Assembly (NCBI GenBank): GCA_024704765.1
Contig: JAKMXF010000337.1
Location: forward strand, 124,001 to 188,000
DNA: 64,000 nucleotides
Origin: Oopsacas minuta
Lineage: Eukaryota > Animalia > Porifera
Reading direction: 5' to 3'
The notes under the pieces are model-generated. The model worked only from the letters and a program-made list of their open reading frames with translations. It made no database searches and was not told where the DNA came from. Positions within the stretch are counted from its first letter, which is position 1, and each line of letters starts with the position of its first letter. The position numbers were made by a program, and so were the translations under genes. This document shows positions 4,746 through 43,686 of the stretch, in pieces.

Positions 4746-7715
4746 CACAGTGGGCTTTATGCTGGAAATAGCATGAAATTTTTACCCCCTCAGAATTGTA
4801 TTTCCTTATTATCATTGAATTCACAATCGTTTCAAACCTAGAAATTAGTAATTTTATTCTGATTCAATAAGTAAATTGGTGGTTATGGTGATGAATATTT
4901 GCGGCTTCTTGTAATTGGAATTTCTGTTGTGTAGTATATCAAACCGATCAAGTTTCATAGTTATATTTTTAGCACTTGTAACTAAGAAGAAAGAATTCTT
5001 TACAATAATGAAACATTTATATTTCAAGTATCTAACTTACATCTTGAAATGTCGTTTGGTTTCTAACTTTCTATTCTAAAACTAGATAAAATGCGATGAC
5101 TATTTAGGACACTTTTTTTCGACGTCCACAGGATATTTTATGCTGAAACTTGTTGTGGCGTTTCATTGCGTGAACTCTCACTGGTCTTAAAATGTAAGTT
5201 ATAATAATACATTCAAAAAATATAATAGTTTAGACCCGCCGGAGGGCGCCCAAAGTATCAAACATTCATTTGAATGGGTGTAACTTTAATGTAAAATTTC
5301 CCTATGAAATACTAGCATTATGAATAACAAGGAAGCTTTTGACTTTCTATCCTCACGTAAATCTGTCAGATATGCAACAATCGTATTTATGGATAGTCAG
5401 CAACTTGATGATAAATATTATAGTTGTATCCGATACAAATTCGTTGAGTTGAAGGGTGATAGAGAGATATTTCGTAAAAGAAACGACCTAAATACATGGG
5501 ATGATATGATATTCTTTGACAATTCAACATTGGCAGAGAAGAGGCGGTTATCGTCTGAAGGGGATATTTGTACTCCTAATCATGTTCATGCAAAGGCTAT
5601 CAGGAAACCACTCCTAGAATTAACGATTAAAGGACAAAGGGTACGTCTGGAACCTCTTTTAGCCCTGATTAAAAGCTTAGCAGCTAGTGAGAACGTGGAT
5701 AGCAAAACGATGGCAGCCATGGCTCTACAATTTGTCTCGTCTTCTTCAGGAGATTACTTCACCAGTTCCTTCTGTCTGGAAATAGTCAACAAAGGCACAT
5801 TTCAAGGCAATATAAAGACACACATCTCAATTGCTAAGTCTACGTTCCTCCTAGGGCAATTGGAAATAGGTAAGCGAAAGTACATTGAATTGAGGAGACT
5901 TTGTAAGTCAGACAATGCACTATTCCCTAAGTATGAGCTAATTTCCCAGTATCGAGCAGATATTACTCTGGATAAGGAATTCATTTTTATCCGCAATGTG
6001 TCTGATGCGCCTATGGGAGCAGGGATATCTTACATTTCTATCATCAAACAGACAATTTCCCGCCTACTCGAATCATTTCCCACAGATTCTGAATTTGAAT
6101 TCCTGTTGACATTTTCTGCAACAGATGGCTTGGATGGATCTGGACCCCATCAAGTTTATAATCAGATTCAAGAGTCAACAGATATTGGTTCCAAAAATTT
6201 CATTCTCTTTGCTTTCAAACCTCTCGCTATTCACGACAGCGCAAACAAACTTATTTGGGAAAACGAAAGGCCCAACACACAATTTCAGATTCGCCCAGTC
6301 ACTTTACTAGCTGCCAAAGAAAATAGCGAAAATGTATGTCATCTAATGGATACTTATATCAATCCTTACGTAGCATACATGGAAGAAAATGGGATACCAC
6401 TCTCGCAAGGACTTGTGAGGATAAAATTGCTCAAGACCATGTTCGATGGGCAAATGGCAGGAATTCTATCTGGAGCCGGTGGTGCTCACTGCCAACTCTG
6501 TACTGCGACTTTCAAACAACTGCATGATGTCGAACTTATACGAGATGCTTTTCCTATTAATCGTTCAATAACATCGGCTAAAGAACTGTTTCAAAGTGTG
6601 AATGAAGTAGAATTTCTATCTCTAAGTTCCAATGACCGTCTTGGATTGACTCACCAACCTATTTCCGACATCGATATAATTTGCTCTTCTCCATTACATT
6701 AATATTTGTGCATCTTCAGATGGATGACCCTCGTTTATCATCTGCAATCAGGTGCAAGGAAGTGGTCACCATCATCCTTAGGCATAAAAAACTCAATGAA
6801 GTTTGTTTCAGGCTTATTGATGGAAAAGACTGGTATGAAGATTGATCAACCCAGCAGTGATGGTGGCACTACATCAACTGGCAATGTTGCTCGAAATTGT
6901 TTCTTGGACAACTAATTTCTTTACTGGGTTTGTTCCTTGATACCAACAGAATACCATGAAAATATAAAGGTCATCCACACTAACCTTTCAGTATGTTTGC
7001 GTATTTACAACAGCGACCGAGAGATAAACACTGAAAGACTGGATATTCTTTGTAAGGACACATACGAATACATTGTAATCAGGTTCCCTTGGGCAAACAT
7101 CAGTCCAACCTTGCATAAATTACTAGCCCATTCTTCAGAACTCATTAGAACTTACAACAATAGCCATGGACTTAAAGTCTTCTCTGAAGAAGCAGTTGAA
7201 GTTTCAAACAAACTCGTTCGAAGGTATCGCGAACACCTTGCCAGAAAAATGTCGTTTTCTCTGAATACTCGAGATATCTTTATACGACTGATGTGTAATA
7301 GTGATCCTGCCCTCAATGTGTATAGATAATTTACAAAAGCAAACAAGAAAACCCACTCTTCTGAACCTCCAGACCAAAAAATTCTTTTCTCACAATTAAC
7401 TTGCTAATAAATAATGATTTAAATAGATGGAAGCACAAGATACTATTAAAATGTGGGTATGTTAAATGTGTGTCTATGATCCAAAATAAGCTTTCTATCG
7501 GGTCTACTAACTGAATTTTAAGCTCAAAAACTATAATTTATGATAATATGAAAGGTGTCAATGACGTCATAACTTTTTAATGAGATGACCTAGATTTTCT
7601 TTTTATGCAGAAATCGTTTCTCAGGGGTAATTTCCTATTGGCTAATAATGCATTATATATCTCTATCTTGCATGGTTTCCTATTTCCATTTCACCCGCCA
7701 AAAATGCCCACTGTG
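4746..7715 (+). mobile_element. RAG1-like/Transib-related transposon #1, complete ends
   Basis: AAGCA|CACAGTGGGC ... GCCCACTGTG|AAGCA (5-bp TSD at 4741-4745 and 7716-7720); both ends carry TGGAAATAG, 10 nt (left) and 20 nt (right) after the heptamer. Confidence 0.92.
5320..7329 (+). pseudogene. RAG1-like transposase with in-frame stops at 6700-6702 and 6913-6915
   Basis: NBD-like RKPLLELTIKGQRVRL; DGLDGSG (D600-equivalent); MFDGQM (D708-eq.); CQLC; SPLH; LHKLLAH; FSEEAVEVSNK (E962-eq.). The three ORFs are in one frame. Confidence 0.9.
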
Positions 7716-7885
7716 AAGCATAGTGAGGGCCCCATGGTTTGTCATGGTCTCCGACTTTACAACCGAAATAGAGATAGTATTGTTCCACAATTAACGGGGT
7801 CATTTTCTTGAACATACTATCCAACATGTAGATACCACAAATATAACAAAAACAGTCATGATCATTTCACATTTGTGATGCATTG
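7716..7885 (-). pseudogene. Chapaev3-like transposase N-terminal Zn-finger part, displaced by the RAG1-like insertion
   Basis: Minus-strand translation HDCFCYICGIYMLDSMFKKMTPLIVEQYYLYFGCKVGDHDKPWA; joins across the AAGCA TSD to (P)HYACRICCNNLVKWSKG. Confidence 0.8.
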
Positions 7886-8194
7886 ACTGTAGAAATAATA
7901 AAGAAGAAAAATATCGAAAATGTACATGAATGTAGATTAATATATTAAGTTAGTTAGAGTTAGTGCCGACCTATGAGGTTACATTCCATATAGTATATTA
8001 GTTAAAGGTATTATAAAAGTCTTGTGAAAGAAGACTCAAAGTACTAAAAATAGTTTCCAAGAAATAATAATTATGGTAAATTTAGCACCAAATTTCCATG
8101 GAAATGCAATAAATCAAAATTATTGAAAACGAAAAATCCTGAAGCATAGGTTAAAAACCGATGACAAATTAAGAATTATCGTAGTTGACAAGTG

Positions 8195-8894
8195 TAATTA
8201 TTGATAGTCAAAATATGTGATAATTCAAAACCTATTAAGAATGTATAATTTCTGACTTGGTATTTGAATTCTACGTAGGAGAGTTACCCCGGATTAAAAT
8301 TTTCAATGGAATTGGACAATTTTTGCCAAAGTTATAGAAGAATTTCAATTTGTGCCATTTGTGCCACCTTTTTCCCAAAGTGGCACAGGTAGCAGGAAAA
8401 GCGCACTACAAGGAACTCAACTAGGGTTAGGAGGAATAAGTCAAAGTAATAATTTCGAATGATATGACTACGTAACCCTTGAATTCCAAATTAACCTCTT
8501 GGTAGCGGCCACTTGTGCCACCTTGGGCAAAAGGTGGCACAAATTGAAATTCTTCTATAACTTTGGCAAAATAGTTCAATCCTATTGAAATCTTAATCCG
8601 GGGTAACTCGCCTACGTAGAATTAAAATTTCAAGTCAGAAATTATAGATTCATAATAGATTTTGAATTACCACATATTTTGACTATCATAATTATCTAAT
8701 GATAATGAATAGTTAACACCTCCAAAAAGGGTAAATCGAGAATATTTTTTGAAATTCTTGAAAAACATATGTCATTCTATGCAAATTACTAGATTACAGC
8801 TACGAATATAGACTACACAATATATAGGAGCGGGAAAGAGTATACAATTAAAGACAATTTATTTGTGTGGTCGAATACTTTTGTCCCTTGACTG
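8195..8894. mobile_element. Remainder of the palindromic MITE split by the Chapaev3-like insertion
   Basis: Resumes at taattattgatagtcaaaatatgtg; ends GAATACTTTTGTCCCTTGACTG|TA; colinear with 39488-40400. Confidence 0.85.
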
Positions 8895-9358
8895 TATATA
8901 TGAGTACATATAGATTAATTTCGTTTTAATCATTTAGATTTTCCAATCGGTCTTAACATAAAAATCTTGATGTAATCGCCACAAAGACTGACACTAAAGG
9001 CTGCATCACATGAACTAAGAAAACTATATAATTATTGACAAATAATTATACTAAATGAGAAAGCTTGAAGCCAAAACCAGGCTGTATCTAGACGTTTGCG
9101 GCGCGCCTAGAGGTACAGAAGTGACTTTTCCCCACTCGAGCGAAGTCGTAGATGGGGACCACTTCTTTTGCGAACTACAAAACGGCGAAAGCTAACAAAG
9201 AGTGGAATTACCTATGCCGCGATAAAGATCAACAATAGAAGTGTGTTAACTAAGCAAATCCAAGACTATTCCCAATTCACATATATAAATCGAGGAATCA
9301 AGGAAACAATTCACACGTAATTCATCAAACAAATACTGCATTTCTTATATATGTTATC

Positions 9359-10640
9359 ATGATTTTAACCTTGAAAAATCATCCAACAATAAGTTTTGAA
9401 GGTTATTCATACAGAATTGACAGACATAATGCGAGCAATGCTATAAAGCGATGGCGATGTGGTATCCGAGATCGCAATGGGAGTGCATATACAATTGTCA
9501 ATCAAGGTAATGCAGACTATGTCAACCTTTCCATTTGTCATATAGATCATTGTATTCGGATCCAGAGTAGAGGTTTGTTGAAGAAGTTATTTCTGTGTTC
9601 AATGTAAAAGTGCGAACTCAAGTACTCCTATCACCTTATAATGAATCTTCTGTGCTCTCCCACAGAATAATAATGGTGCATCAAGATTTCCTTTGTTCAA
9701 TCAAATTGACTCTTCCTTGTATCGTGAAAGGCTTAGCCGTTTTCCTGAACTTCCGATGTCGCGAGATGAACTAATTATGCCAAATCAACTAAGTAAAACT
9801 ATTGCAGGCTGTGATTTACACGTTTTCTTCCATAATTCAGCTGTTCACAAAAACTTTGTTTGACTGGAAATTGATGGAACTGCTGTGTATTTAACAATAT
9901 ACTAGTGAAAATGTTCTGATATTTGAAATTGAGTGACAATACTTTGTATAGTCAATAATAATATAGTGATTTTAGTACAGAAGAAAATATTCGTAGGCTT
10001 TCTACCTCCTTCTCATTGGTGTGTTGATGGTATATTCAAGAGTGTACCTAATATTCATGGCTTTGAGGGCGACAAGCTCATTCCTTTGGTCTATTGTTTA
10101 CTATCTTCTAAAACACGAGCAATATATTCTCAAGTTTTCAGTACCTTAAAGATAAAGCTGACAGTCTATCTGTAATTTTGATGCCTACATTATTTACCTG
10201 TGACTTTGAAAGTAGCTTCATATCAAGTGTCAGGACAGAGTTCCCTACTACTCATATTCGCGGGTGTTACTTCCATTATGGCCAGGCAATATATAGGCGT
10301 GCACAACTATTAGGATTATCAACGATCCATATACATTCGAAGGTCATAAAATGTATATTCGAAAACTTCTTTCAATTGCATATATCCCGATTGATCTTAC
10401 CCCTCAAACCTTCGATTAGTTTAAACAGCATTGTCCTCCTGAACTGCAGAGCCTTTTGAATACTCTGAGAACTACTGGATGAACAGTGTTGATCATAATC
10501 TTTGGAATATCTATGGAGTTAAACGGAGGTCAAGTAGGAATCCTGAAGGTTGGCACTTGTGGTTAAATCGGCCTATTGGGAAAACAAATGGTAACATTTA
10601 CGAAGTCATCTCAAAATTGATAAGAGAGCAAGGGGCAACG
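9359..10640 (+). pseudogene. Degenerate MULE (Mutator-like) transposase with FLYWCH-type N-terminus; 3' truncated
   Basis: ISFEGYSYRIDR...RWRC; WCVDGIFK; IPLVYCLL; TCDFE; IRGCYFHYGQAIYR; NPEGWH. Confidence 0.8.
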
Positions 10641-13600
10641 GATGGGTGTCGATCTTGACGGGGCCGACTGGTCAGGTTTTGGGGTATCAGACTCCTGAAA
10701 TTTTAATTATGTTTGTTAGGGTTAATTCATTCAACAAGGAAGTCATTAATTATTAATACAGTTTTCACGATTTTCTATAACACTGATTATTTTGTATTCA
10801 GAATCCTGACCCATGTTCACTACCTAGAGTTGTTCACTATTTGGAAGTTTAACTGTACTTACATTTTCTACTCGAGCCATTAATTATGTATTCTTTCATT
10901 TAGCAAGGAAGCCACTGGTCCTAGGCAAAGTAATTAGGAATATACATTCGAACTTTCAATTAATTATTACAATTTCTATCCTTCTAAATAGATAGATTCT
11001 AATGTCTAGCTTGGAACGTAGTGAACCTATGTCGCATGAAGCGCAACACCCTGAAAAAAAAGAGACAGACCCTCCTCTCATCATTTCTTCCGAAGGCAAC
11101 TTCAATAACTTCCCCGTCGGAAACTACAATCTACAATTCAGTTCCCACGGCCAGCAAAGTCGCAGATATATCTTGTGACGATCTGGACGATCAGCATGTA
11201 ATTGGTGGTGCGTTCGAAGTGCATATAAAAAATTTTGAAAAACTGTTTCCTATTCTGCAAGATGATAGCATGTTACCGAATGTGCTTCCAAGTGTCGAAT
11301 ATAAAGATGACCGTAGGAGATTTCTCAAGAAAGAGTGGTTAAAGATATATCCCTGGATGAAGCTCAATGGCGACCTGAATACTTGTCATTGTGCTGTATG
11401 CTATTGGGCAATCTAAACAAGCGAACTCATCCATCAGAGCGTGGAGACACCCTGGAGAACTCTAAATAGGCTAAGACGAACAAAGAGAGGGCTGGCCAGC
11501 TTCAAACATGGAAAGAGTCATCTGGACGGCCATGAGGGCGTTGACCACACTAATGCGTGGCGTGTATACCAAATGGAGCTTAATAAGCAAAATGTAGATT
11601 CTATGTTGAGACAAAACCGCTCCGACGAACTCAGAAGAAACAGAGTGGGGCTCAGGGTGATTTTCGATAGCCCATGACGTGTGCAAACCAAGGGATTTCA
11701 CTTCGAGGACATGGTGATGAGAAGCAGGCTGGAAACCTCTGGAATCTTGTGCCTTTAGGGAGTCGGTTCAACAAAGACGCCAAGAAATATTTCTCAAATG
11801 ACTCAAACTCCAAGATCAAGTTTCTCAGTCCGGGAATTCAAAATGAAATGATAAAGTTGTTGGCTGACAATCTGTTGAATTTCTTCTTATCTAAAATCCG
11901 AGAAGAGTCTACCGCTGGACAGGCCAAAGCAGAGGGACGTTTCTTTTACTCTTGTATCATGGACGAGACTCAAGATATTAGGAGGCGTGAACAAGTCAGC
12001 GTTTGTGAGCGGTATGTAGATGCTGAGTTGACTCCGACAAAAGTATTTCTAGAGTTCTTCTACACAATAACCACCGAAGCTGAAGCATTGCTAACAGTTC
12101 TTAAGGAGGCTCTCGTTTCCTTAAATCCTCAGTTTGGGAACCTCAGGAGACAGGGCTATGATGGAGCAGCCAATATGAGTGGATGTGAACACGGTCTCCA
12201 AGCTAAGGTCAGGGAGGAGAACCCGCGTGCTCTTTGGATGTATTGCTTTGGACATAACCTAAACCTTGTAGTGCAAGACAGGATGAAGGACCGTGATATG
12301 GAGAACGCAATTCAAAAAACGCGCTCTGTAATCACATTTATCGAGGCATCCTCGAAGAGGTACGAGGTATTTAAGAAGATGGCAGCACAGGAAGATCACT
12401 ATGATCGTCGCAAGATAAGACCATTGTGTCCAACTAGATGGGCAATGAGACTAGCCTCTGTCGATAGCATGCTACTGCATTATACTACAGTATTAATGCA
12501 ACTGGAGATCGCTCTGGATGACCGTGAGCTCAAGCCTGATAAGCGCGCAGAAGCACGAGCGTTCATACGCTCCTTGGAGGAGTTGAATACGCATTTTGTA
12601 GCAGAACATTCCGGAAGCTATTGCTCATCACCAACCCCATTCATGTGATGTGCCAGGCTAAATGTGTCACTGTAGGGAACGTGAGGTCCTGGGTCCAAAG
12701 TTTGATTGCTACACTATCTGGTATTGGGACAGATGAAGTTGGTACTGCATCCTTCTACAGGAAGTAAAAGCCGCTGCTCACAAGCTGAGGATCGACGAGC
12801 CAAAGCTTCCTAGAGTTTCCCGAGCACGGCGCGGAGATGCCGCTGATGTTGATGATGCTGACGAAATCTCTAATCGCATCGAAGAGCTCTACGTCAAAAT
12901 ATTTACCAAGGTAAGATATTATGAACTATGTAATTCAAAACAAGTAAGCATTAATTTAAAAATTTTTTTGCAAGGTTTTCTCTTCAGCTGCAACATCTCT
13001 GATCCTGCAATACTTACGCTAGGACCTTCGTATGGCAGACTTCTACGCAGCTTAATTGAGGATCCTGACATGGCCGAAGCAGAGTTGACCGAACTCATAA
13101 CCTTCTACGATGGCGACCTACCAAGCATGGAACAACTAAAATTGGAGAGATAGGCCTAGTATGGTCAGTGTGACGAACAGGTCATAGAAAAGACTACAAA
13201 GGTCTCAGGAAGGTTTAACTTCTGAGCACGGAATGCGAGGAATGCTAAAAGGGATGCACATAGTTCTAGTGCTGTACCTCATCCTACCCGCCACGACCTG
13301 TGAAGCGGAGCGGTTGTTCAGTGTGCCTCGCAGACTGCTCACCTACATACGTTCCAGGAAGTGCCAAGAGAGACTGAGTGGCCGGGCCATTCTAAAATAC
13401 CACAGAGATGTTGTACATGAGGTGCTACCAATAGGGAAGACGATGGAAGATTTCATTGAGAGGACGACAGTGAGGAGGAACATGTTTTTTAATGTGGAGA
13501 ACTACTGAACTAGATCTTTGAATATTTGGTGATTTTATAGTTGCGTTGTCTTATAGCTTATGCTTTTGTTCAGTTTGTTGGCTAAATTTAAATGTTCAAG

Positions 13601-13717
13601 ACTTTTTATACTGGACGCAAAATGTATGATTATGAATTTCGACTTAATGAACCCCGAAGCCTCGTGGGCATGGTCCCGTTAACTACATTCCGAAATCTGA
13701 AAAGTTCGACACCTATG
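10641..13717 (+). mobile_element. Degenerate hAT transposon (ZMYM1-like transposase remnants at 11021-13508)
   Basis: Imperfect TIRs GATGGGTGTCGATCTT / CATAGGTGTCGAACTT (13/16; no TSD seen). Motifs GISLRGH, IMDETQD, QGYDGAANMSG, CFGHNLNL, LCPTRW, ILPATTCEAERLFS. Confidence 0.8.
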
Positions 13718-14599
13718 ACTACGTATAGATAGAATAAAAGAAAAGAAAAATTATGGAGTTGTTGAACTCGTTATATTAGACAAAGTTAATGACTCATAGA
13801 AATTCTAGGAAAAGTGGGAAGCCATAGGCCCAATTACCCCTATTCCAACGCCCTGTTGAAGGATATTCCATGCTACCTAAACGGTAAATGGCCCCTACGT
13901 CGCATCTACACAGTAACCCCAAAGTGGACGGTTACAGCGACTGTGATTGGATATGGGTAGACTTGATATTACCAGGTTCCTTCAGTCGAACTAAAACCAA
14001 TTTTATAACTTGTCAAATGCATCCTCTAACTCACTGTATATTTTAACTTTCTGTTGGTACCCTATTTGATGTAAATATTTGTTCTTGTTATCCAGAAATT
14101 CGTATTAACGGTGTTCGTACCGAGGTTTCATTGTATTTATTAACAAATTAAGACGTATGGAATTCCACATTGTTATATATTATCTAGCTATTAAGGTTGG
14201 AGGAGAATACATAGGCCATCACTTAAAGGAACATGATTTGAATCCTTTCATGAAGATTCCTATATAGACACTTCCACGAATAGGGATTCCTCTAAGTGGC
14301 ATTATTACTGAAAGAAAGCACTCATTTTACAAACATGAGTTTGTAATCTTAAAGTTGGCGCTTTGGGTGTCGATCTGTGCTGAATTGAATTTCAGGATTA
14401 TATTACAGTCCTCTCGGATTGGCTTGCAGGCTTGTCCTGACCAATTATTAGAGCGTCTCGAACAGACCTTAATCAAGTCAATTTCAGGTCAATTTCATGT
14501 CATTATCATGTCATCTACACGTCATTTAGAGTATTTTAAGCTCATTTTCTGGTTTCAGAGAGTTTACGGTCTTCTTTCTATATTCTTGCCTTATTAATC

Positions 14600-16857
14600 C
14601 TGTCACTTAGTAAACTCGTAAAATTGATTGTATTACTTCTATAATACGATCAACTATTTTCGAGTATGATATATCTTCGATGTAATACGTTGAACAGCAT
14701 TTACTAAAGATGGCTTTCTACCTGGTCAAAGGAGATTGAAACATATCACGGTTTTAAGTCCCATGACGCAAGCTCTGATCATCTACTTTCCAAGACTCGC
14801 TGGAAAAGTTACAGCACCCAGAAAAAGAATCCAGCATCCGGCATTAGAAATATGTTAGGCCCTGAGAGGCCTTATGTAGTGGAAAATAATCGTGTATACA
14901 CGAAAACACTGTTGGAGTATCATCGGTACTTTTGTTCCGAGGGATAGCATATAGAAGACACGATGAAACTAATGAATCTCTCAATGCTAGAAAGTGGAAA
15001 GATTTATCAAGACTATGCTATGCACTAACCCAACATTTAAGCAACTGCACGGTAGGATGCTACAACAATATAATGCGTATGATGACACGTCAAAGCGATC
15101 ATCAATCGATTTGGTAAAGCGTTAGCTTCCGAGGTTCGTCATCAAAGTGAGAAACGATTACACAGCGCAGGGATGTAATCAATGCTCATTGATGAATGCA
15201 AAGATAATGCGGGCATGAAGAGCTGTCCACCTGTTTTAGATTTGTAAACGAAGGACGAATCGAAGAGCGATTTTATGATCTCACCAGGCTAAAAGAAACT
15301 AGTGCCCAGACTATTGTCAAAGGAGTTTTGCCAACCACTGAAAAACTGTGTTCTTCCACCACGCATTTGACAGTTGGAGCAGATGGCGCATCTATCATGA
15401 CAGGGTGCTACGAAGATGTAGGTGCTAAACTAAAAAGACATTACCCTTGGTTGTTGTACATCCATTGTGCTGGGCACCGTTTGAATTTGGTTGTAGCTAC
15501 TTATTTCGAACAGTTTCTGAAGCAAATAATGTTATAAATGTCTATAAGTCCTTACATGACATTCTCAACATCGTCAGTCACAGGGAAATATTTGAAACTG
15601 TGCAAAAGGAGTGTTATCCAAACAGTCTATAATGGCAACCTCCTCTCTTACGGAAGTCCGATGTTCTTGTAGGTTTGAGGGAGTTAATATTATGGTTAAA
15701 AGACTTCAGGCAATTCTTGTAAGTCTGCAGAAGATTGGTGCTTCGAATTCCACCAAACTGATTTGGCTGCGGGTCTCTATCACAAGATTCTCTCGGAAAA
15801 ATTTGTTATATCGTTTTGCTTCCTCCACAAGGTATTAGCCATAATGGATGGATTAAGTAAGACTATGCAAGAGTATGACACCAAATGGGTAAATGTTGCA
15901 AACGAAATGTTGGCTGTGAATCCTTATCCTCGAGCTTAAAACCAACGACATCATAGAACATGAGGAAGAGCTTTGTACAACTGTAAACATTGTATTGGAC
16001 TATGAGAATCCTCTGTATGTTCCGAGGCGGGGTGTCACAAGATCTACAAGCATACGCGAGTTTTGTGAAAGTCTTAAGGTACCTTCTCTTCTCATGCTTC
16101 TTGAGGAATTGGAACGACGTTTCTCAAGGAAGAATCCCAGTATGCTGACAGCACTGGAAGCTCTAGATGCGCCAAAACCGACATACCTGGATTATAACAC
16201 CATATCCACCCTTGTTGGAAAATTCGGAGATGGTCGGAAATTTGACTCGGCATTACTAAAAACAGAGTGTGAACAAGCGAATATTTTGATTGCAGCTGGA
16301 AAACACAATGATTCTGAGTTGTACCCAACCTTTTCAAAGATTTGGCCATTTCGAAGACCTTACCTGTAGGTACCACAACGGTGGAAAGGAGTTTTAGTGC
16401 GATGAATCGCATATTAAGCTGGGCTCGAAACAGCTTAGATTATTCGTTGGCCAGTGACTTTATGCTGCTTTCGATGAACAAAGACATTTTTAAAAGACTA
16501 AATTTGGATAAAGTGCTTAATCGTTGGGTGAATCAAACAGTCTGAGTTCCACCATTTAACTAAGTACACTTTAGAAATATATTATTTACACACTTAAGTC
16601 TTTTTAACACTTGAGCTTTTGTTCTTCATTAAGGCTTTTGAACACTTGAGGATTAGTATTGTATTCTCTCAATTTCGCACCACTGTATGCTATTTTGGTG
16701 TGTTGGTTCTATTACAATTTGTACTCACTCCTTCCACTTGTAAAGTAAAAGATTTCTTGTGTGTTTCCACTTTTTTACTCAAATTTCATTCAACGTTATT
16801 CTTTCGAAATTATTGGGGGAGCTCCCGCCCCCTCTCGCCCCCTAGTGTCAGCCAATA
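14600..16857 (+). pseudogene. Degenerate hAT transposase (ZMYM1-like) with GC-rich 3' terminus; 5' end not resolved
   Basis: GIAYRRHDE, LIDECKDN, GADGASIMTG, YIHCAGHRLNL, LPVGTTTVERSFSAMNRI. Confidence 0.8.

Positions 16858-32830: not shown

Positions 32831-32832
<2 letters not shown>

Positions 32833-32911
<79 letters not shown>
32833..32911. repeat. (CA)39 microsatellite in RMND5 intron 1
   Basis: Direct reading. Confidence 0.98.
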
Positions 32912-32913
<2 letters not shown>

Positions 32914-33369
32914 TAATGTAGTATAGTTGAGCTACATATAAGTTCTCTATTCTTCTTCTTAAAGTTTTCCAAATTTCCTTCACAAAAATAGTAATTCTAA
33001 GTTGGTATCAACAAAATTTATTAAGTCAAATTGTTAGAAATCACATTAGAATTCCCAGAAATTCTAACAAAATTTGTTTGTTTCTACATTTAATCAGACA
33101 TGATAACCGAACTAAGCAAAATGCTTGTTTGCAGTTAAGTACTGAGTTTAACTTAGGACATATTTGTTAATAAGATACAGTATTCTTTCACTCTGGAGTC
33201 TGGAGGGTATCTGAATGTAGTAACTAATATTCAAGACAAAAATATTACATGCTGATTACACTAATCCAAAATATGACTAATGCATAAAATGAATTGGTCA
33301 AAACGAGGTAGCAAAATTTTAGTGTTCCTTTTCACTACTAACGTAAAACTTCAGCCGTGATCGGTTATA

Positions 33370-33602
33370 GAGTAGACCCTTGCTAATCCGAACAGGGGTG
33401 TTCCGATTCATGGAATATCAGTTCTGATTAGCGAATTTGTTTGGATTAGTGAAGTAATACATTTATATGGGGAATTATAAACATCATGCAACTGAAAATT
33501 ATAGGAATATACTATATAAGTAATATGTATTGCCAATCAGATTATGGCACTGTAAGATATAATAAAAACCTCACTAATCCGAACGAAACATTATTACTAT
33601 AG

Positions 33603-33694
<92 letters not shown>

Positions 33695-33830
33695 TTATGT
33701 ACTATGTACATATTAAAATTTCAAATTCAGATTGAAAATTATTATTTTTAGATCAAAAATTCTTGATTTTCTACTGTTCGGATTAGCGAGGGTTCGGATT
33801 AGCGAGGTTCAGATTAGCGAAGATCCACTG
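33370..33830. mobile_element. pogo/Tigger-like MITE in RMND5 intron 1
   Basis: TA|GAGTAGACCCTTGCTAATCCGAAC ... GTTCAGATTAGCGAAGATCCACTG|TA; repeated CGGATTAGCGAG subterminal motif. Confidence 0.7.
33603..33692. repeat. (TAC)30 microsatellite inside the MITE
   Basis: Direct reading. Confidence 0.98.
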
Positions 33831-34307
33831 TAGTGGAATAATTTGGATATTGTGGTGTCGACGGAATGATTATGGGCTCTTCAGACAGCATTTTGAGGTA
33901 GTTGCACAGCAAAGAGTTATTAAGTAACCCAGCTACAATAACAGCATGCTGTTAACGACAACTTACTGTTAACGGCATTGTTACCGCAATGGTAATACTA
34001 TCCTTGGCCAGATTGTGTAAAATAAATTGGCACTGTTCATAGTCAATAAATCTATACATTTCGTCATATTTATAATACGCAATAATTTTTCAGAATGTAG
34101 AAATGAGTCATTTGATTTTTGATTGATATTCGTGTGAATCAAAATCGTTAGATGATGATTTTACAATCATACAAAATTTAATGCATTGACTTTGAATGAT
34201 ATTCACTTGAATTTGTCACAAATATTGTGATTTAAAATGAAAATGAAAGATTTATGTCAAGACATGGCCAGGGAAATATCATTATACAATATAATACAAA
34301 AACAAAC

Positions 34308-34496
34308 CAGTAATTGGAGCGATGAAAATGAATCGATATGATCAGAAATACCATTTCCATAAACAAATAAATTCGATTGGATTTGAGTTAGGGAGGAAGT
34401 CATGAGGTTGAAATTTCTCTTCAACAAGTTGAGAAAGGCAGTATAGTTTTTCTGAATTTTGTCCATTTCACGAATATGATTCTGATAAGAATCCAT
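34308..34496 (-). CDS. RMND5: RMND5/GID2 coding exon 1
   Basis: MDSYQNHIREMDKIQKNY resembles recalled MDQCVTVERELEKVLHKF; 63 codons then a GTTTGT donor, in phase with exon 2 and of the expected length. Confidence 0.7.
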
Positions 34497-34826
34497 TGAA
34501 GTAATAGGAAACTAAAATAAGTCAAAAAATGATGTGCACAGTAGAAGAATCGGTACAATTATAGGATATTATACACCAAACTTTTGCAAGATGGTCAGAA
34601 TCGCTATATGAGCAGTTATAGAGCATGTTAAGAGATGAAGATTGAGCTAGAGATTTCTAAAATCGGTCAAGAAACAACAAAGTTACAGCAATTATATGAT
34701 ATGTTGGAGACGATGATAACAAAGCAAAATTTTAACATGAGATTTCGAAAAAATGGGCAAACATAAGTGTTTGTACACATTCATAAAAAATTGGTATATT
34801 TTGCTAAGTAAACATGACCATGGAAT

Positions 34827-35605
34827 CAGTGTTGTTTTGCCAAAAAAAGAAGTGGGGGGCGCTCCCTTTTCAAATTTAGCAGTTTCTTAGAAAACATAGG
34901 TGAAAACGGCCCCCAATAATGAAGTGGGTGCGCCATACCTCCCACCCGCGCGCTCCCTCCAAAATACCACTGATTATTATTATATATTGTGGTGTGTTTA
35001 TATTTGTATCAGATAAAAAACAACTGCGTGAAACATGTATAATATGTAAGGTTTCAATAATTCACGATACATTGTAAATGCCTAAATGCTATGTATATTA
35101 TTCAAATATACTTCCAAACTGGGTTTTCTTCAACTATCTGACTATTGCTACTCCTTATTAGAGTATCTGATGCACTCCGATGATTTCTTAGCCAACATCT
35201 AGCATAATCACTAGGATCCCATATAGAAAGTGGAGGGCCATTAAGTTTAATGAATAGAAGAGCAGATATGTGTGGTACAAGCAGCCGAGAACGCGGATCC
35301 TCCAATATGATATTCATATGACAGAACCCACGTTCACATTCTGCAGTACTACATGGGGCCAGTTGGATACAATTAAACAATGGTTTTATTGTGGGTGGCA
35401 AGAATGTACCGGAATTTTCATAATAGTCATTTATGCGAGTGAAACGTAGTGCTAAAGTGCTAATAAAGACAATAATATCATATTAAGTCAGTAAATATAG
35501 ATAAATTAAGTCCATTAACTGATAAACTCGGGGGTCGGGTGCTAGAATGAGGCCCAAGTTCTTCCAGATTATGTGCCAAGAGCGCCCCCCCCCAAAACAT
35601 CACTG
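34827..35605 (-). mobile_element. Internally deleted hAT derivative retaining the dimerization-domain coding fragment (35102-35401)
   Basis: CATGGAAT|CAGTGTTGTTTTG ... CAAAACATCACTG|CATAGAAT (8-bp TSD, 7/8 match); APCSTAECERGFCHMNII..D.RSRL; extra TIR-like end at 34959-34972. Confidence 0.8.
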
Positions 35606-36792
35606 CATAGAATACTAAAATGCTACTAACTCCGTTTGATAAAGGATAGAATATTATATACAATTGTTGAAGTGTGGTAGGTGTTAAATGGGATACATTT
35701 CCCCTAATAATAATGATGTTGTGAGGGGAGTTATGACTTTCATTTTCAAATTCTGAGATTTGAAAATTAGACAATATTGAAAAGTTTATATACAATATTC
35801 CAATAAACTGCTAGCGTAGCGAGCAAAAAATTAAAAATCGGTGGCGACAGTTTAGTCAAGGTATTCAATTCGTTGAAAGTAGCACTAGTAATTGGAGGCA
35901 CTATAAAATGTTGAATTTTACCAAATACACATAGACCTCCAATTACTAGACCACTATAGACAAATTAAATAACAGACTAAGCTGTCTCTATAGATTGTAA
36001 TTTTAGATTTGTAGCTTTACATAACCTTGGGGCGACGTGTCGGCCGTTTTTGTGTTCCTTTGCTTATATTTTTCGTTTCAGACTATATCAGTAACTGACT
36101 CCTGTCATTCGAAACGTCAAAGTTGACTTACCTAGCTGTGTGAAAGGGTACCCGATCGAAACAAAAACTATAATTTCGTTGAGGCGTACAGGAAATAAAA
36201 ATACCTTGGAATATATCGGTTTTAACGAATACATAATAATGACCATATTGAGTCATGTTAATCATATATTGGTACCATAAATGCCAAGTGGAGTTGAAAG
36301 ATGGGTCACTCGATGCTAGGGTACATTTTAAGAAATGAATGTTGTAAAATTCCTGAGCGTTGATATGGAAACACTTTCACTAATATAATCATGTGACGAC
36401 TCAAACGAACGGAATAATACCGTGGATTATGGCTCAGAACATACTAAAGATTAAGTCACAATAGAGTGGTTCATATTATAGGAAAAGTAATTTTTTGTAA
36501 TATATGAACCAAATATTACTATTCATTGATGTGGTAAAACAACTGGCACATCGTACAAATATGCATATATACTCTAGTTGCATAGGCTAAAGATAATTTC
36601 AACATTTGCGAAATTAATTCCATAAACAATGAGAGAAGGCGATTGTTCAGAATTTCTGCAATATCAACAGGAAATATATTCTTGTGTGCCACTTGTGTCA
36701 CAAGTATGGTGTTCCAATACATTAGGTCAGAGAGTGCATGCACAAATATGTAAACTACAAAATAAGGTAGATTAAATCCATCGACATCCAAC

Positions 36793-38232
36793 CTAGAAAT
36801 TCTTAGGGTGATTTTTAGCATTATTTGAAAGTATCTCAATTATAGTGGAAACAATCCCATTGTCTGCTTCAAATTCATACATTTTCTTCTCATTTCCTTT
36901 CATTGCCAGAATATAGAAAGATTTCCTACCAGAAGTAGAGGCTTGTCGTACCAATGTATCACAACGAAGAATAGAATTCCTAGCAATGACCTCGGTCTTG
37001 GGCAACGTAGGATGAATTCGAAATTTTGATTTATGCAATTGTTTAGAGTCTAATATTAGTGGTTTGAAAGTAATCTGAATTTCACTGATTAAGATTTGTG
37101 TGATTGGTTCGCCTTTCTTATTTAACCAAACAGCTTCATAATGTTCAAAAGCGTGAGGAATTGTCGAATCAAAGTAGACATGTGTGTCAGTAGTATTAGA
37201 TAATACTTCTAATTCATTTGATCGATCCTGTTTTAGGAGCCAAAAATTATTGTGTTTGAAATCAGATAATAGACTAAAATGTGATATGGGATTGAAACAA
37301 TCATTATACTCTGATAAAATGTAACTATCACAAGGGACTAACCCCTTTTTTCTAATTGCAAGGGATAGGACTTCTATCATTTGAATATCAATTGCAGGAC
37401 GGGGCATAGTTATTGTTTTTTCTTCAATAGGATAATCTCCGAGTTTATAAAATATAACAACACACTGTTTATCACACTCAGGGTTGGATTTCTCAGGTGG
37501 ACACTCAACACGCACTAGTCCTAAGTGACTAAAACGAAATTTTTTCAGGTAATCAGTAGGTGAAAGTGATGGAAAATCACGATCAATATCACCATTTTCA
37601 TCTGCAATGTATAATTTGAAATCACCTACTGAGCCGTCTATAGGTAAACCTAAATCCCCTTTGTGGTATAAGTATAACGATAAACCTATTAGATCAAAGA
37701 TTCGTGTATTTATATTGGCAGTAACATCAACAAAGGTTTTGCAAGCATCAAATATAATAGTGACAGATAAACTTCGCCTATCATTCGAGTTAATAGCATT
37801 GAATTTAGAGTATTCGAAAAAAGGTAATTCTTCAATAGAAAGTTGAGATATTTGTTTGCTCAACAAAGATAGAGATGGATTATGATGAAATACTACCTTT
37901 TTAGGAAACTGTAGAGATAAATCATTTAAAGGAATCATGTCATTAACTAATTTTACAATTTTTTCACTATTTTTAGGTCGCCATTTAGCAGCATTCTCGA
38001 TGTCCTTGATTGTCTGATCCATTTCCTTTTTCGTAATACTATGAGTATGTTTTATCCACATAATTCCTAAACCAGTTAAACTCCGTTGATTTATATGATA
38101 GCCTTGATCTGTTTCTTCAATGGAGTCCTCATCGTCAATGAATATACGATCAGCATACCCGGTATCATCGCTTATAACGAATGAATGACAGATATGCTGA
38201 ACAAGCCTGGCTTCGTTATCCCAAAATGCCAT
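36793..38232 (-). CDS. MAPKAP1: TORC2 subunit SIN1 (MAPK-associated protein 1), 479 aa, single coding exon
   Basis: N-terminus MAFWDNEARLVQHICHSFVISDDTG (cf. [25 protein letters not shown]); CRIM-region DLIGL and LYIADENGDIDRDFPSL...KKFRFSHLGLV; RBD- and PH-like C-terminal half; uninterrupted ORF. Confidence 0.93.
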   Translation of the reverse strand: MAFWDNEARLVQHICHSFVISDDTGYADRIFIDDEDSIEETDQGYHINQRSLTGLGIMWIKHTHSITKKEMDQTIKDIENAAKWRPKNSEKIVKLVNDMIPLNDLSLQFPKKVVFHHNPSLSLLSKQISQLSIEELPFFEYSKFNAINSNDRRSLSVTIIFDACKTFVDVTANINTRIFDLIGLSLYLYHKGDLGLPIDGSVGDFKLYIADENGDIDRDFPSLSPTDYLKKFRFSHLGLVRVECPPEKSNPECDKQCVVIFYKLGDYPIEEKTITMPRPAIDIQMIEVLSLAIRKKGLVPCDSYILSEYNDCFNPISHFSLLSDFKHNNFWLLKQDRSNELEVLSNTTDTHVYFDSTIPHAFEHYEAVWLNKKGEPITQILISEIQITFKPLILDSKQLHKSKFRIHPTLPKTEVIARNSILRCDTLVRQASTSGRKSFYILAMKGNEKKMYEFEADNGIVSTIIEILSNNAKNHPKNF

Positions 38233-38559
38233 CTGTACTCGACAACTACATGCGAATAAATATAAAGTTAGGGAAAAGTATTAGTGAGGAACAAATTTAA
38301 AAAGGAAGATGCCACAGTGGTATTGAGCCCTCTTCAGGATTGCTCCACAATTTGTTACATATTTCAAATACTTTTGAGAAAGATCTCCAAATGTTTGACC
38401 AAACATAATTAATCAAGTATTCTCACGGAATACTAGAGCCTCAATAATTTCTGAATTACCAATTTGCAAATAAGAAAATATATTATAAACGTAATATCAT
38501 TCAAAATTCGATTACTAGATCTGTTGCTAATTAAGAATAAAATCCTTATATCACTTGAA

Positions 38560-39070
38560 ATTAACCCCAAAATCAAAGACGCACTCGTGATCGTTTGTCA
38601 GAGTTGTAAAAATATGGGCTTTTTACCATAAATATTTCCCTTTAAATGAGCAAATTGTGGCTCTATTTATCTAATCATGAAATTATCAGAGATTTAGTCA
38701 GGATAATGTTAACAAAGACAGTCATAAGATTCCTTTAGGTAAATTATCATATGGATTTTCAAATATTCGTCGTATAGTCGGATATGTAATTGTACATTTA
38801 GTAGTGTTGAAATAATTTGCTCGGTCAGGATATATAGATATATATATATATAAATACATATACTGATTAATTGTGTTTTAACAAAACAGATGACGTCATA
38901 TTTGGACTGGGAATAGTTGGATTACATGACTTGTGGTAATTATTATATTCAAAAATAAATTTATATAATAAATATATTATTTAGAGCAAAACACCAATTC
39001 GACATTTTCGAGAATATTTCAATTGCCTACCAAATTTATAAGCCTCGACGTAATCCATGGTTCAGGAAAA
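38560..39070. repeat. Old dispersed repeat, related to segments at 45420-45640, 46430-46530 (inverted) and 47220-47270
   Basis: Shared blocks such as tcaggataatgtt, aattgtacatttagt.gtgttgaaata, aattgccta, gtaatccatggtt. Confidence 0.55.
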
Positions 39071-39487
39071 TATGGTCAGTGAAAACGCAATAGTTACTTA
39101 GGCAGTGGAAGATATAGAAATACATACTACTCTATGTAATAGAGTATCCTATGACTTTGAATTCCTAGAATTCTCAGAAACTATTACTGCTAATTTAAAC
39201 TAATATAAATTTAGCCATGGGCCGGAGAAAATGCCTCGCCTGATCCCAACCTCGAAGGCACTGTTTTACATGACTACTTGCCGTTTCGGTAAACTATTTG
39301 GTAATTTTGGTAATTTTCCCATTTTGTGAGTAGAGTTTTATAAAATTGTTAGATGATGTAGTATAATAAAAGTGAGATTCGGACTCAGCATAGTTGATAG
39401 TACAAATTTATAGGCTCCAAGAAGGAAAAACATTGTCAGAATTTCTGGAACAATGTAACAGTGATGGTGCACAACCAAACCAATATA

Positions 39488-40400
39488 CAGTCAGGGGACA
39501 AAAGTATTCAAACACACAAATATATTGTCATAAATTGTATACTCTTTCCCGCTCCTATATATTGTGTAGTCGATATTCGTAGCTGCTATCTAGTAATTTG
39601 TATAGAACAACATATGTTTTGCAAGAATTTCAAAAAAATATTTTCGGTTTACACAGTTTGAAGGTGTTAATTATTAATAATTATTAGATAATAATTGATA
39701 ATCAAAATATGTGGTAATTCAAAGCCTATTAAGAATCTATAATTTCTGACTTGATATTTGAATTCTACGTAGGCGAGTCACCCCGGATTGAAATTTCCAA
39801 TCGGATTGAACGATTTTACCAAAGTTATAGAAGAATTTCAATTTGTCCCACTTGTGCCACTTTTTGAATAAAGTGGCACAGGTTGCAGGAAAAAGCGCCA
39901 CTACAAGGAAATCAACTAGGGTTAGGAGGAATAAGTCGAAGTAATATTTTCGAATGATATGACTATGCTAACCCTTGAATCCCAAAATAACCTCTTGGTA
40001 ACGGCCACTTGTGCCACCTTGAGCACAAGGTGGCACAAATGGCACAAATTGAAATTCATCTATAACTCTGGTAAAAATTGTTCAATCCGATTGGCAATTT
40101 CAATCTGGGGTAACTCGCCTACGTAGAATTCAAATATCAAGTCAGAAATTATAGATTCTTAATAGGCTTTGAATTACCACATATTTTGATTATCAATTAT
40201 TATCTAATAATTATTAATAATTAACACCTTCAAACTGTGTAAACCGAAAATATTTTTTGAAATTCTTGAAAACCATGTTATTCTATACAAATTACTAGAT
40301 AGCAGCTACGAATATCGACTACACAATATATAGGAGCTGGAAAGAGTATACAATTTATGACAATATATTTGTGTGTTCGAATACCTTTGTCCCCTGACTG
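39488..40400. mobile_element. Complete 913-bp palindromic Tc1/mariner-type MITE (~370-bp arms)
   Basis: TA|CAGTCAGGGGACAAAAGTATTC ... GAATACCTTTGTCCCCTGACTG|TA; arms are reverse complements nearly throughout. Confidence 0.92.
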
Positions 40401-40509
40401 TAGATTAAGGGTTGAAACTTTCAAGGGTGATTAGACAATCTCCGTGAGGTATCTACTGATGGTTAAGAGCTTTTAGCTAACACACTGCTTCATTATTATA
40501 TATCCTATA

Positions 40510-43500
40510 CACAGTGGTTTAAAATGGGAGTTAGTAAAGAATAGGTATTCTAGTACCAGATAGCCACATGCAATGTATTATTTGCGAATAGGTTATCGTA
40601 TCCGAGGAATCGAATGGGGTAATCAAATTTCTTCTATGGCTTCTAGATTTCTGGATATGACGTCATCACATATTATGATGACGTTACATTTTAAAAATTA
40701 TTTAATAAAACTCATAGAAATTTCCACTTCATAAGAAAAATCTCCTACTCTGTATATATATATACTATTATCCTGTATAGTATTTGGATAAGAGTGTATA
40801 GATTTAACATTTTAATGAATCTATGAATTAATTATAAGTGAATCAACAATTTCGTCGATGGAAGAATCTAGTAATCTATTTTCTGTATTATCCCTACAAC
40901 ACTTTGCTCTTTTTGTGTGGCCGTGTTCCCCACACATTTCACAAACTAAACTTGAACGAAATTGATTCAATACAGGGTCACTTTCAGAGGCCAGTCTCAC
41001 GAAAATGTCCATTGCATTATCTTCAAATAAAGACTTCCTTGCAAGATTCTCCCTATACTTTCTTAGTAACTTGTTGCATGCCTCGGATCCCTCTTCAGAG
41101 AAACTTTTCAGACCTCGCCCAAGGTTGAACTCTTTCAAAATTTCTTCTGAGTGAGCTAATACCCAGTGTAATGTTGGGGTAATGCTCACCCAAGGTAATG
41201 AATCAACGATCAAGAGATATGTATCGGTGCATAGATCACCAAAGACCTCGGTGTTAATGATCCTGTCTGAATTGATTATTCGAAGAATAGCTGACAAGTG
41301 TGTATGTAGTTTTGAAAGTGTTTCTTTGTGTTCTGTTTCAACAACTGACAATACACACTCAATGTATTTCGAATCACAGGAAAATGCTCGACGAGCTACA
41401 CTACCAGTAGAGCTAGTACCTCCACTTGCATTCGGCTGATCTATCCTCATTCCTGTCTTCCCTTCAATCAGATTTCTGACAAATATCATTGAATTTTTTA
41501 TCGTCAAAGATGTTGGTGACCATGTACGTTTTCCACAATTCAAATGATAAATTAGTAGATTGAACCACTTGAAAATGCCAGTGTACGAGTGTAACGGAGA
41601 TGCTGGAAGGATGTTTATTGTTGAGGTTGGTTCGTGCGTTATGTTACAACGTTGGTTTGAAGGAAGTGAGAAGAACGAATGGCTGTCTTCTATTTCACCG
41701 AAAAGTTGAATTGCATCAGTAATGTACCTGTTGATAGGAAATCCCTGTATTATCAACTCACGATCACTGAGTTCCTTATGTGTTGCTGTGCATAATTGAC
41801 AACTTGCCTCACCTGCCCCAGATAGAATTCCTGCCATTTTCCCATCAAGCATTGATCGAACAATGTCGACTCGTACTTGCTGATCAGAGCCAAGAGTAAA
41901 TCCTTCACTTCTCATAAGATCAGTATCAGTATTGATTAGATCGTCCATAAATCGCTTGATATTAGCTTCGTTTTCTTTCGCAGCGAGGAGGAAATCGGAC
42001 GTTGAGCAAAAGGAGAACTGGAAGTGTTATTTTTCCAGAGTTCGCGACTGCTATTGCTTATTACCTTTACAGCTCTGAAACAGAATAAGATAAACGACTT
42101 AGTATCTGTATTCGTGTTTGATTGATTATATACAGTGTGACTTCCAGAGCCATCTAATCCGTCTGCTATCTGGAATTGTAGGGGATAATCTTGAGCTGGA
42201 GGTGGCGGTAGCGTGGACATAAGCCTGCAAAAAGTATGGCAGACGTGATGGGCATATGGCATATATACACCAAGTGGAGTTTCAGGATTGGGGTACATCT
42301 GAATATCCGACCGTAAAATTATACTGTTTCTTTCTTCTACTACCCTATAGTATGCCGGGAAACGAATATCGCTAGATAGCAAGTGATGTCGGAGTTGTGT
42401 GTATTTCCTCCTGCCAATTTCTAGGAGATCTACAAGGAACACTGTCTTGGTAACATCGAGCTCTTTCTTCAACAATTTACCGAATTGACCCGAAAACTTG
42501 TCATAGACTACAGATTTTGAAACTTTAACTATTTCTCGCTGTTTTGTTTGGTCCGATAGTAGTTGCAAGGCAAGTGCAGCTATCTTGATTTCTGAAGTAT
42601 TCTCAACGATTGAGAGTGCTTTGATAGATTCCAAGACATTTGAGAGTCGTAAGCGTTGTTGTTGCATCGTGAGATTGTCAATACTCTTCCTATGGTTTGC
42701 AGAGAGTGTGGATATGACTTCTTCATCATCTGAAGACAGCTCAACGGTATCATAAAAACGGTTCCTCTTCAACTCTGGTTCCATGGATATACCACAATGC
42801 CACCAGTCTCCCTCTAAGCAATCTAGCGATTTCTTTGCCTTCCTGATCCTGCTTCTTACTCGGAGGAGCGTTGCTTCCAATTGTTTCCTTTCTTCGAAGT
42901 CCATTTGAAAGTTCTGCTCAAAGAAACTGAGTGTCGTCGAGATACAGTTGTTGTTGTCTTTCAAAATCTTCGCAAATTCAAGATGAGAGTTAGGGAAAGT
43001 TGGTTCTTGAGTCATTGATAAAAGCGTAGAAAACGGTTGATTATCAGCAAATTCAATTTGTTAATGTCATATTAATCATGTATTTATATATTACATTTAT
43101 TGGTAATTGGAATGCTGCAATCGAGTAGATAAATTTAGCATATAAATTGCATAGCAACAAAAAGGTGACAATGGAATTCGCTGAAATTTTTCATGTTGTG
43201 CACTGTTTCGGGCGTATCATTTTAATATGTCTTTCTAGATATTATAATGCCATTTTGGAATTAATTTCTAAGTGGTGTTTTGTGGTGTTTTTTTTGCGGC
43301 CATTTGGAAGTTCTTTTTTTAATAATATTGTACCTCTAAAGTACCATTAATCAAATCAACTTTGAGTCCAAATGTAGTAAAGATACACTGACGAAAATGA
43401 GAAATCAGATTTAGCATAACTGAATTGTGTTGAGGAAATAAAATAAATTTGATTCGAAGAATTCTGCGACGCTCTCAAGTAAACTTAAATTGGTGCTAAT

Positions 43501-43686
43501 ATTAGCATCACTGAAACCGCAAATAGAACTATTTTTGATTGATTCTTTAAATTCATGTTGTGAGAGCTATATGTATTTGATCGAATTGAAATTTGAAATT
43601 AACATTATTCAAACAAACAAGAACGAGTTTAAACCATTAAAAATGAAATCTATTTTTTGTCTATTCTTTGCATTCAAACCACTGTG
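40510..43686 (-). mobile_element. RAG1-like/Transib-related transposon #2, complete ends
   Basis: CTATA|CACAGTGGTTT ... AAACCACTGTG|CTATA (5-bp TSD at 40505-40509 and 43687-43691); AAAGAATAG at 19 nt (3' end) and 10 nt (5' end) after the heptamer. Confidence 0.93.
40821..43015 (-). pseudogene. RAG1-like transposase, 731 aa if one base is restored at 41992-41994
   Basis: ORFs 41936-43015 and 40821-41948 join as RPI(F)LLAAKENEAN; DGLDGSG, MLDGKM, CQLC, SPLH, LHWVLAH and FSEEGSEACNK all present; C-terminal CEMCGEHGHTKRAKCC. Confidence 0.92.

Follow-up and report, generated by a model that had tools for sequence, protein, structure and literature searches.

A 64,000-nucleotide stretch of the genome of the hexactinellid sponge Oopsacas minuta (assembly GCA_024704765.1, contig JAKMXF010000337.1, forward-strand positions 124,001 to 188,000; hereafter the window) contains two decayed transposons, W1 and W2. 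They represent two related families of cut-and-paste DNA transposons in the Transib superfamily. A 460-aa ORF from the window is listed on this contig at NCBI, and protein entries of the assembly carry the name Oopsacas minuta. Each of their ends consists of a heptamer, CACAGTG, a spacer, and a 9-mer, and the spacer is about one helical turn longer at the 3' end than at the 5' end. This anatomy is conserved in related families, the two 9-mers of an element co-vary, and the transposase has a region homologous to the nonamer-binding domain (NBD) of RAG1. As a whole, these observations are probably best explained as Transib families with homologous but unequal ends, in which an NBD dimer would act on the 9-mers and the layout of the ends has been inherited.

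In the following sections, we describe the elements and their ends, the conservation of the end layout, and the transposase, and then compare these families with known systems.

Ends and genes of the two elements

The end sequences, coordinates, and target site duplications (TSDs) that a first-pass annotation had given for W1 and W2 were confirmed to the base by reading the four end regions (Table 1). In agreement with that annotation, the 9-mer of each element is identical at its two ends (TGGAAATAG in W1 and AAAGAATAG in W2), and the positions of the open reading frames (ORFs) place the short spacer upstream of the transposase in both elements. In a blind scan of the window, in which 49 x 47 sites of the forms CACNNTG and CANNGTG were paired at a separation of 150-9000 bp and identical 5-bp flanks were required, the W1 and W2 pairs alone were returned. 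Note that CACAGTG alone shows no strong enrichment in the window (10 matches versus 4.7 expected), so the specificity rests on the combination of pairing, TSDs, and an internal gene.

The matching 9-mers and their spacing might also be a coincidence in AT-rich DNA, given that a perfect 9-mer common to both subterminal regions of 40-55 bp appears in 34 of 2000 shuffles (1.7%). The offset of the perfect 9-mer is +10 in W1 and +9 in W2, and it is +9 or +10 in four further families. However, the same register is found in nine families and five single ends, with constant polarity, by which coincidence is effectively refuted.

Complete elements are 2970-3501 bp long, and each contains one transposase reading frame of ~2.1-2.2 kb. 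Inside the elements there is neither a second ORF of more than 130 aa nor a convergent RAG2-like kelch gene, such as that of the RAG-like (RAGL, RAG1L-RAG2L) transposons. Since elements of 3.0-3.5 kb contain no second gene and no space for one, they have no RAG2-like partner, and the earlier description of them as single-gene, RAG1-core-like transposons without RAG2 holds. The frameshift in the W2 transposase gene corresponds to an extra A behind position 41991 in other copies, which were found in sequencing runs. Another O. minuta copy (L001), flanked by the TSD CCCCT, is 97% identical to W1 over its full length.

Table 1. Transib-type elements and their features in the window
Feature	Position	Strand	Description
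W1	4746-7715	+	2970 bp, complete-ended Transib-type transposon; TSD AAGCA at 4741-4745 and 7716-7720
W1 5' end	4746-4771	+	heptamer CACAGTG 4746-4752; 10-nt TR2-like spacer GGCTTTATGC; 9-mer TGGAAATAG 4763-4771
W1 3' end	7680-7715	-	heptamer CACAGTG 7715-7709; 20-nt spacer; 9-mer TGGAAATAG 7688-7680
W1 transposase pseudogene	5320-7329	+	single frame with two in-frame stops (6700-6702, 6913-6915); NBD-like part encoded at 5599-5796; zinc-knuckle tail absent (region 7330-7460)
W2	40510-43686	-	3177 bp, complete-ended Transib-type transposon; TSD CTATA at 40505-40509 and 43687-43691
W2 5' end	43661-43686	-	heptamer CACAGTG 43686-43680; 10-nt spacer GTTTGAATGC; 9-mer AAAGAATAG 43669-43661
W2 3' end	40510-40544	+ (element on -)	heptamer CACAGTG 40510-40516; 19-nt spacer; 9-mer AAAGAATAG 40536-40544
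W2 transposase gene	40821-43015	-	two frames (41936-43015, 40821-41948), i.e. one frameshift
W2 encoded features		-	NBD-like 42694-42506; DGLDGSG 42163-42143; SGAGEASCQLC 41822-41790; AHSEE 41156-41142; CX2C..GH..C knuckle 40943-40896
W3 relic	51807-54544	-	5' end at 54544: CACAGTG, then ...GGTGATAG, ATAG ending at position 26; transposase remnants 53845-51807
W4 relic, 3' part	55137-55792	-	3' end at 55137: CACAGTG...GTAATAG, ATAG ending at position 35; transposase C-terminal remnant 55354-55792

Conservation of the end layout

The loci of relatives were chosen across a tree of 25 full-length proteins, and they represent nine related families in O. minuta and four ENA assemblies (ERZ20067936, ERZ25071281, ERZ25069837, and ERZ25072730). 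The 5'/3' spacer lengths are 10/20 in W1, L001, and L002, 10/19 in W2, L003, L004, L006, and L010, and 9/19 in L005. In addition, there are single ends of the 5' type (W3 and L011) and of the 3' type (W4, L007, and L012). When the ends are aligned from the tip without gaps, the last base of ATAG (or GTAG/TTAG) falls at position 25-26 in all 11 of the 5' ends and at position 35-36 in 11 of the 12 3' ends. In all complete elements, the transposase gene lies downstream of the side with the short spacer. Four loci (L002, L007, L011, and L012) are on contigs of 2-3x coverage, and the unmatched TSDs and the odd heptamers in L007 and L011 were read with caution. A scan of JGI metagenome contigs for relatives, based on the alignment A1, gave 148 pattern matches, none of which was confirmed.

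Families that keep this layout diverge to ~40% protein identity, and their 5' non-coding sequences cannot be aligned with each other past ~40 bp. Thus, the asymmetry of about one helical turn noted in W1 and W2 proves to be systematic, and its polarity is kept in other copies and families. Random spacing of the 9-mer in other copies, which had been named beforehand as counter-evidence, was looked for and was not found.

Both ends open with CACAGTGG, continue with a short, family-specific TR2-like stretch, and then reach the 9-mer, which follows the pattern nnGnAATAG and is also specific to the family. Positions 1-8 and the 9-mer have a high information content, and the stretch between them a low one. 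All complete copies are reported with CACAGTG at both ends, the heptamer of the 3' tip of L004 being separately given as CATAGTG, and the relatives have 5-bp TSDs (CCCCT, TAAAG, CTTCG, GGTAT, CGGAA, and CACCA). The first four bases of the 9-mer vary by family (TGGA, AAAG, GGGT, and others), yet they match between the two ends of one element. Over the whole 9-mer, the identity is 7.8/9 within an element's own pair versus 6.2/9 across families (permutation p = 0.0016), as is expected if one protein recognises the site at both ends.

The first-pass annotation was wrong on one point, namely that the spacers are largely unrelated. In fact, when the two ends of an element are compared, their first 3-10 nucleotides behind the heptamer match (5-9 of 10), and in a gapped alignment a single indel of 9-10 nucleotides accounts for seven of the nine end pairs. 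The insert, which is specific to the 3' ends and conserved across families, reads roughly GCAnwTTAG and ends with TTAG/TCAG at positions 22-26, where the 5' ends carry ATAG. Judged from these alignments, the two ends are homologous throughout but not equivalent, with an offset of about one helical turn. The layout is therefore better described as a heptamer, a TR2-like stretch, an optional insert of 9-10 bp, and the 9-mer.

The sequence of this insert raises a problem, since the 3' end may hold two tandem sites rather than one site behind a longer spacer. If so, there might be no pairing rule at all: the 3' end would have an extra, degenerate transposase-binding motif in tandem (a proximal nnAnTTAG and a distal, better-conserved nnGAATAG), either arrangement would be tolerated, and the marking of left and right would be incidental, like the unequal subterminal sites of many transposons. 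This is consistent with TTAG/TCAG/TTGG ending at positions 25-26 of the 3' ends, in register with the 5' ATAG, and with the best global alignment of L005, which pairs the 5' 9-mer with the proximal 3' motif. Further ATAG-type blocks lie deeper in the 3' ends (~49-53), and W2 and L003 have a second ATAG in their 5' ends, at positions 34-37. On the other hand, the distal 3' motif is far better conserved than the proximal one, and it is with the distal motif that the first four bases of the 5' 9-mer co-vary (3.1/4 in their own pair versus 1.8/4 across families). Moreover, reversion to symmetric ends is seen in none of the nine families. We consider it unlikely, on this evidence, that the longer 3' end reflects only a tolerated extra motif.

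The 3' ends alone contain conserved blocks past the 9-mer, at positions 36-72 from the tip (40545-40581 of the window in W2), in W1, W2, and L002-L012. These blocks are GGTAT immediately behind the 9-mer, GATAG at ~49-53, and AAATGTATTAT at 61-72 from the tip. Read on the sense strand as ATAATACATTT, the last of these is possibly a variant of a poly(A) signal.

One might accordingly suppose that the subterminal blocks serve expression of the element, as a promoter at the 5' end and as a poly(A) or termination signal at the 3' end, rather than binding of the transposase, and that the unequal distances are a by-product. An A-run or a TATA-like stretch right behind the 9-mer in the 5' ends would fit this idea, as would the 3' AAATGTATTAT block if it acts as such a signal. 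However, the same family-specific 9-mer is found inverted at both ends and co-varies, which is expected of a protein-binding site common to both ends and not of a promoter and a terminator, and the transposase has an NBD homologue. We therefore regard a role in expression as very unlikely. A scan of W2 for bacterial-type promoters and terminators found no enrichment, although such a scan is irrelevant to a eukaryote.

Some of these families have been active. The copies L008:5391-8379 and L009:5391-8379 in ERZ25069837 are 100% identical over 2989 bp and are flanked by different TSDs (CGGAA versus CACCA), which indicates very recent transposition; both contain an intact transposase ORF of 719 aa (P0033). 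The W2 family is multi-copy: in three runs from the source sample (X1-X3), contigs break exactly at 40510 into many unrelated flanks, and the depth within W2 is far above that of its right flank. In a run from another organism, contigs match the first 33-38 nucleotides of the W2 3' end, and two of them pass into other sequence at 40510 and 40514.

Several additional observations concern individual copies and their surroundings. The relics W3 and W4 are arranged head to tail on the minus strand (51807-55792), which brings the number of Transib copies to four per 64 kb. A 3' end of W3 was sought by means of the expected TSD (GAACA) and heptamer variants, and none was found; CACAGTGG at 53533 within the W3 remnant may mark a nested end. 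In L004, a perfect palindrome of 2 x 113 nucleotides without a spacer (L004:12545-12770) begins 5 nucleotides inside the 3' tip, in the copy with the heptamer CATAGTG and a mismatched TSD. It may be a foldback introduced by long-read assembly, or a real inverted duplication beside a hairpin-forming transposon end. Next to W1, an ORF of 172 aa (4194-4712, minus strand), which has no Pfam match and is listed as a gene in the NCBI annotation, begins 34 bp from the W1 5' end, so that W1 lies directly upstream of it. The left flank of W2 (40300-40420) has a word depth ~50x that of W2 in runs X1-X3 and belongs to another, far more abundant repeat.

The transposase and its nonamer-binding domain homologue

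For structure comparisons, we use P0066, an intact relative of 724 aa that is 67-75% identical to W2. A phmmer search with P0066 against the PDB gives HzTransib (6pqn, E = 1.3e-22), the amphioxus BbRAG1L (6b40, E = 4.3e-10), and RAG1 (E of ~4e-4). Its AlphaFold2 (AF2) model, with a predicted local distance difference test (pLDDT) score of 78.8, matches HzTransib with a Z-score of 31.6 and a template modeling (TM) score of 0.80, and RAG1 with a Z-score of 30.5. The motifs DGLDGSG, CQLCTA, and AHSEE are conserved among the transposases. In a Pfam search of the window ORFs, the RAG1 matches were weak and all below the threshold, so the classification rests on the sequence and fold comparisons with the PDB.

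The transposases are ~710-730 aa long. They begin with a helical region at the N-terminus, which is followed by a three-helix homologue of the NBD, a flexible linker, and a DDE core like those of RAG1 and HzTransib. About 180 residues of the sponge proteins are N-terminal to the part that can be aligned with HzTransib; against RAG1 chains that contain the NBD, the structural alignment extends to model residues 106-182, which correspond to RAG1 391-459. A profile of the NBD region built from 22 sponge-type proteins has as its top PDB match 3GNA, the crystal structure of the RAG1 NBD (E = 4e-5), and the remaining matches, with E up to 0.003, are exclusively full RAG1 chains at the same location. 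When folded alone, the NBD-like domain has a pLDDT of 82 and superposes on 3gna_A at 2.0 A over 62 columns with a TM-score of 0.75, the Foldseek E-values being weak for so short a helical domain. The linker between this domain and the core (residues 173-182) has a pLDDT below 50. Taking the profile matches and the predicted fold together, we conclude that the transposases carry a homologue of the RAG1 NBD, placed upstream of the DDBD.

The C-terminal part is more variable. A zinc-knuckle tail of the CCHC type (CX2C..GH..C), at columns 735-750 of the alignment A1, is present in W2, P0066, and the P0007-P0016 clades, and it is missing from W1 and from the P0027, P0030, P0033, and P0034 clades. 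Since the tail-less clades keep the 10/19 end layout, the asymmetry is independent of the tail. In the core, query residues 419-472, which may correspond to the alpha11-alpha12 region of the ZnB domain that Subgroup I Transibs retain, oppose only residues 240-257 of HzTransib, yet they align through to BbRAG1L, and ~36 residues behind the CxxC motif align to BbRAG1L and are missing from HzTransib.

These features suggest a mechanism in which the catalytic core would recognise the heptamer and cleave there, with integration producing the 5-bp TSDs, while a dimer of the NBD-like domain, held on the flexible linker, would bind the two 9-mers. The complex would be assembled on a short end paired with a long one, in the manner of RAG on 12/23 recombination signal sequences (RSSs), but without RAG2. 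That an NBD dimer reads 9-mers set one helical turn apart is plausible, and a candidate domain is now in hand. On this view, the NBD-like domain would recognise the 9-mer, and synapsis would need, or at least favour, a short end together with a long one.

Several points, together with the possible tandem sites in the 3' end, weigh against this mechanism. In the family of L008 and L009, the 9-mer is degenerate, matching at 4/9 in register, and there is an alternative match of 8/9 at an offset of 13; we leave this case as ambiguous. The 3' end of L011, which comes from a contig of 3x coverage, is also ambiguous (14 or 20). The families are of common ancestry, so the counts of conserved ends are not independent events. 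No TSD-flanked short non-autonomous copies, which would offer a natural test of pairing, occur in the window and 13 loci (238 kb in total). Finally, the GRPR/K AT-hook motif of RAG1 is not conserved; the sponge consensus at this place is R-K-[P/S/N]-L.

How the 12/23 rule originated is a standing question in RAG evolution. HzTransib, the only Transib characterised by both biochemistry and structure, is without most of the NBD and without a real nonamer, and it therefore cannot tell whether a RAG2-less transposase enforces asymmetric pairing. The sponge Transibs combine an NBD, 9-mers, and a one-turn asymmetry with the absence of RAG2, and we hold it as a tentative possibility, somewhat short of an even chance, that they truly require a short and a long end for synapsis. 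If this is true, a 12/23-type rule would be an NBD-based property that is older than RAG2. In any case, the sponge families are a practical experimental system, because they offer an NBD homologue, co-varying 9-mers, an asymmetry of 9-10 bp, and intact, recently mobile copies.

Comparison with known systems

In P elements, the spacing from the terminal repeat to the internal transposase-binding site is 21 bp at one end and 9 bp at the other, and one end of each kind is needed. Among Transibs themselves, an asymmetric end architecture has already been published in kind, and the concept is not new. The first-pass interpretation stands as far as the anatomy and the asymmetry are concerned, but not in its unrelated spacers. 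What is new here is that the elements occur in another phylum, Porifera, that their ends have exactly the 10/19-20 geometry and the nnGnAATAG motif, and that there are intact, recently active copies in which an NBD and clear 9-mers are found together. We found no publication on Transibs in sponges in the literature searched. The layout is probably a trait inherited in the Transib/RAGL lineage rather than an invention of the sponge elements.

Kapitonov and Jurka (2005; PMC1131882) described several Transib families with RSS12-like 5' and RSS23-like 3' termini, namely Transib5 of D. melanogaster and Transib2_AG and TransibN1-N3_AG of A. gambiae, and remarked that, from the structure of Transibs, "even the 12/23 rule can be derived". 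These asymmetric Transibs are restated by Yakovenko et al. (2021; PMC8355894), who build a hypothesis on them. The sponge elements resemble them in having a single-gene, RAG1-core-like transposase, a 5-bp TSD, and termini with a CAC heptamer and a second conserved block, and also in polarity, with a short 5' and a long 3' spacer that differ by about one helical turn. However, the insect spacers are 12 and 23 bp long instead of 10 and 19-20, the nonamer is an A-run rather than nnGnAATAG, the consensus heptamer is CACAATG rather than exactly CACAGTG, and the hosts are insects rather than a hexactinellid.

Tao et al. (2022; PMC9435367) reported that all Subgroup I Transibs, which include ctenophore, Hydra, and bacterial members, have asymmetric bipartite terminal inverted repeats (TIRs), a CTT1 tail, and an NBD equivalent, and they also reported a 4/13 spacer pair in a protist RAGL. 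The sponge elements share the asymmetric bipartite ends and the NBD homologue and, in W2 and several clades, the CX2C..GH..C tail, whereas W1 and several other sponge clades have the same ends without the tail. Note that the nearest solved protein by phmmer is HzTransib, a member of Subgroup II.

The ends of PflRAGL-A from the hemichordate Ptychodera flava consist of a heptamer, TR2, an asymmetric spacer, and a nonamer, with an asymmetry of 10 bp (Martin et al., 2023; PMC10629977), and the same authors make the case for an ancestral origin of the NBD, of the CCGHC tail, and of asymmetric TIRs. Features in common with the sponge ends are a heptamer, a TR2 conserved between the ends, a 10-bp asymmetry of the spacers, and a nonamer-like block. 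A further likeness lies in the PflRAGL-A transposase, in which an NBD and a CCGHC tail occur together. PflRAGL-A differs in having a RAG2-like gene and an NBD of the GRPR/K type, whereas the sponge elements have no RAG2-like gene and carry R-K-[P/S/N] at this place.

HzTransib of Helicoverpa zea is the closest solved structure and is similar in catalytic architecture, 5-bp TSD, and heptamer-type ends. However, most of the NBD region is missing from it, and any resemblance of its TIRs to the nonamer is slight or absent (Carmona et al., 2016; PMC4840297), while the sponge proteins have the ~180 extra N-terminal residues that include the NBD homologue, and the sponge ends have clear 9-mers.

In the RSSs of V(D)J recombination, the nonamer is A-rich and ACAAAAACC-like, and the spacers measure 12+/-1 and 23+/-1 bp, in contrast to the nnGnAATAG and the 10 and 19-20 bp of the sponge ends, which belong to mobile transposons with TSDs and no RAG2. 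Nevertheless, both systems have the identical heptamer CACAGTG, a bipartite signal, a difference of one helical turn between partners, and a domain of the NBD type available to read it.

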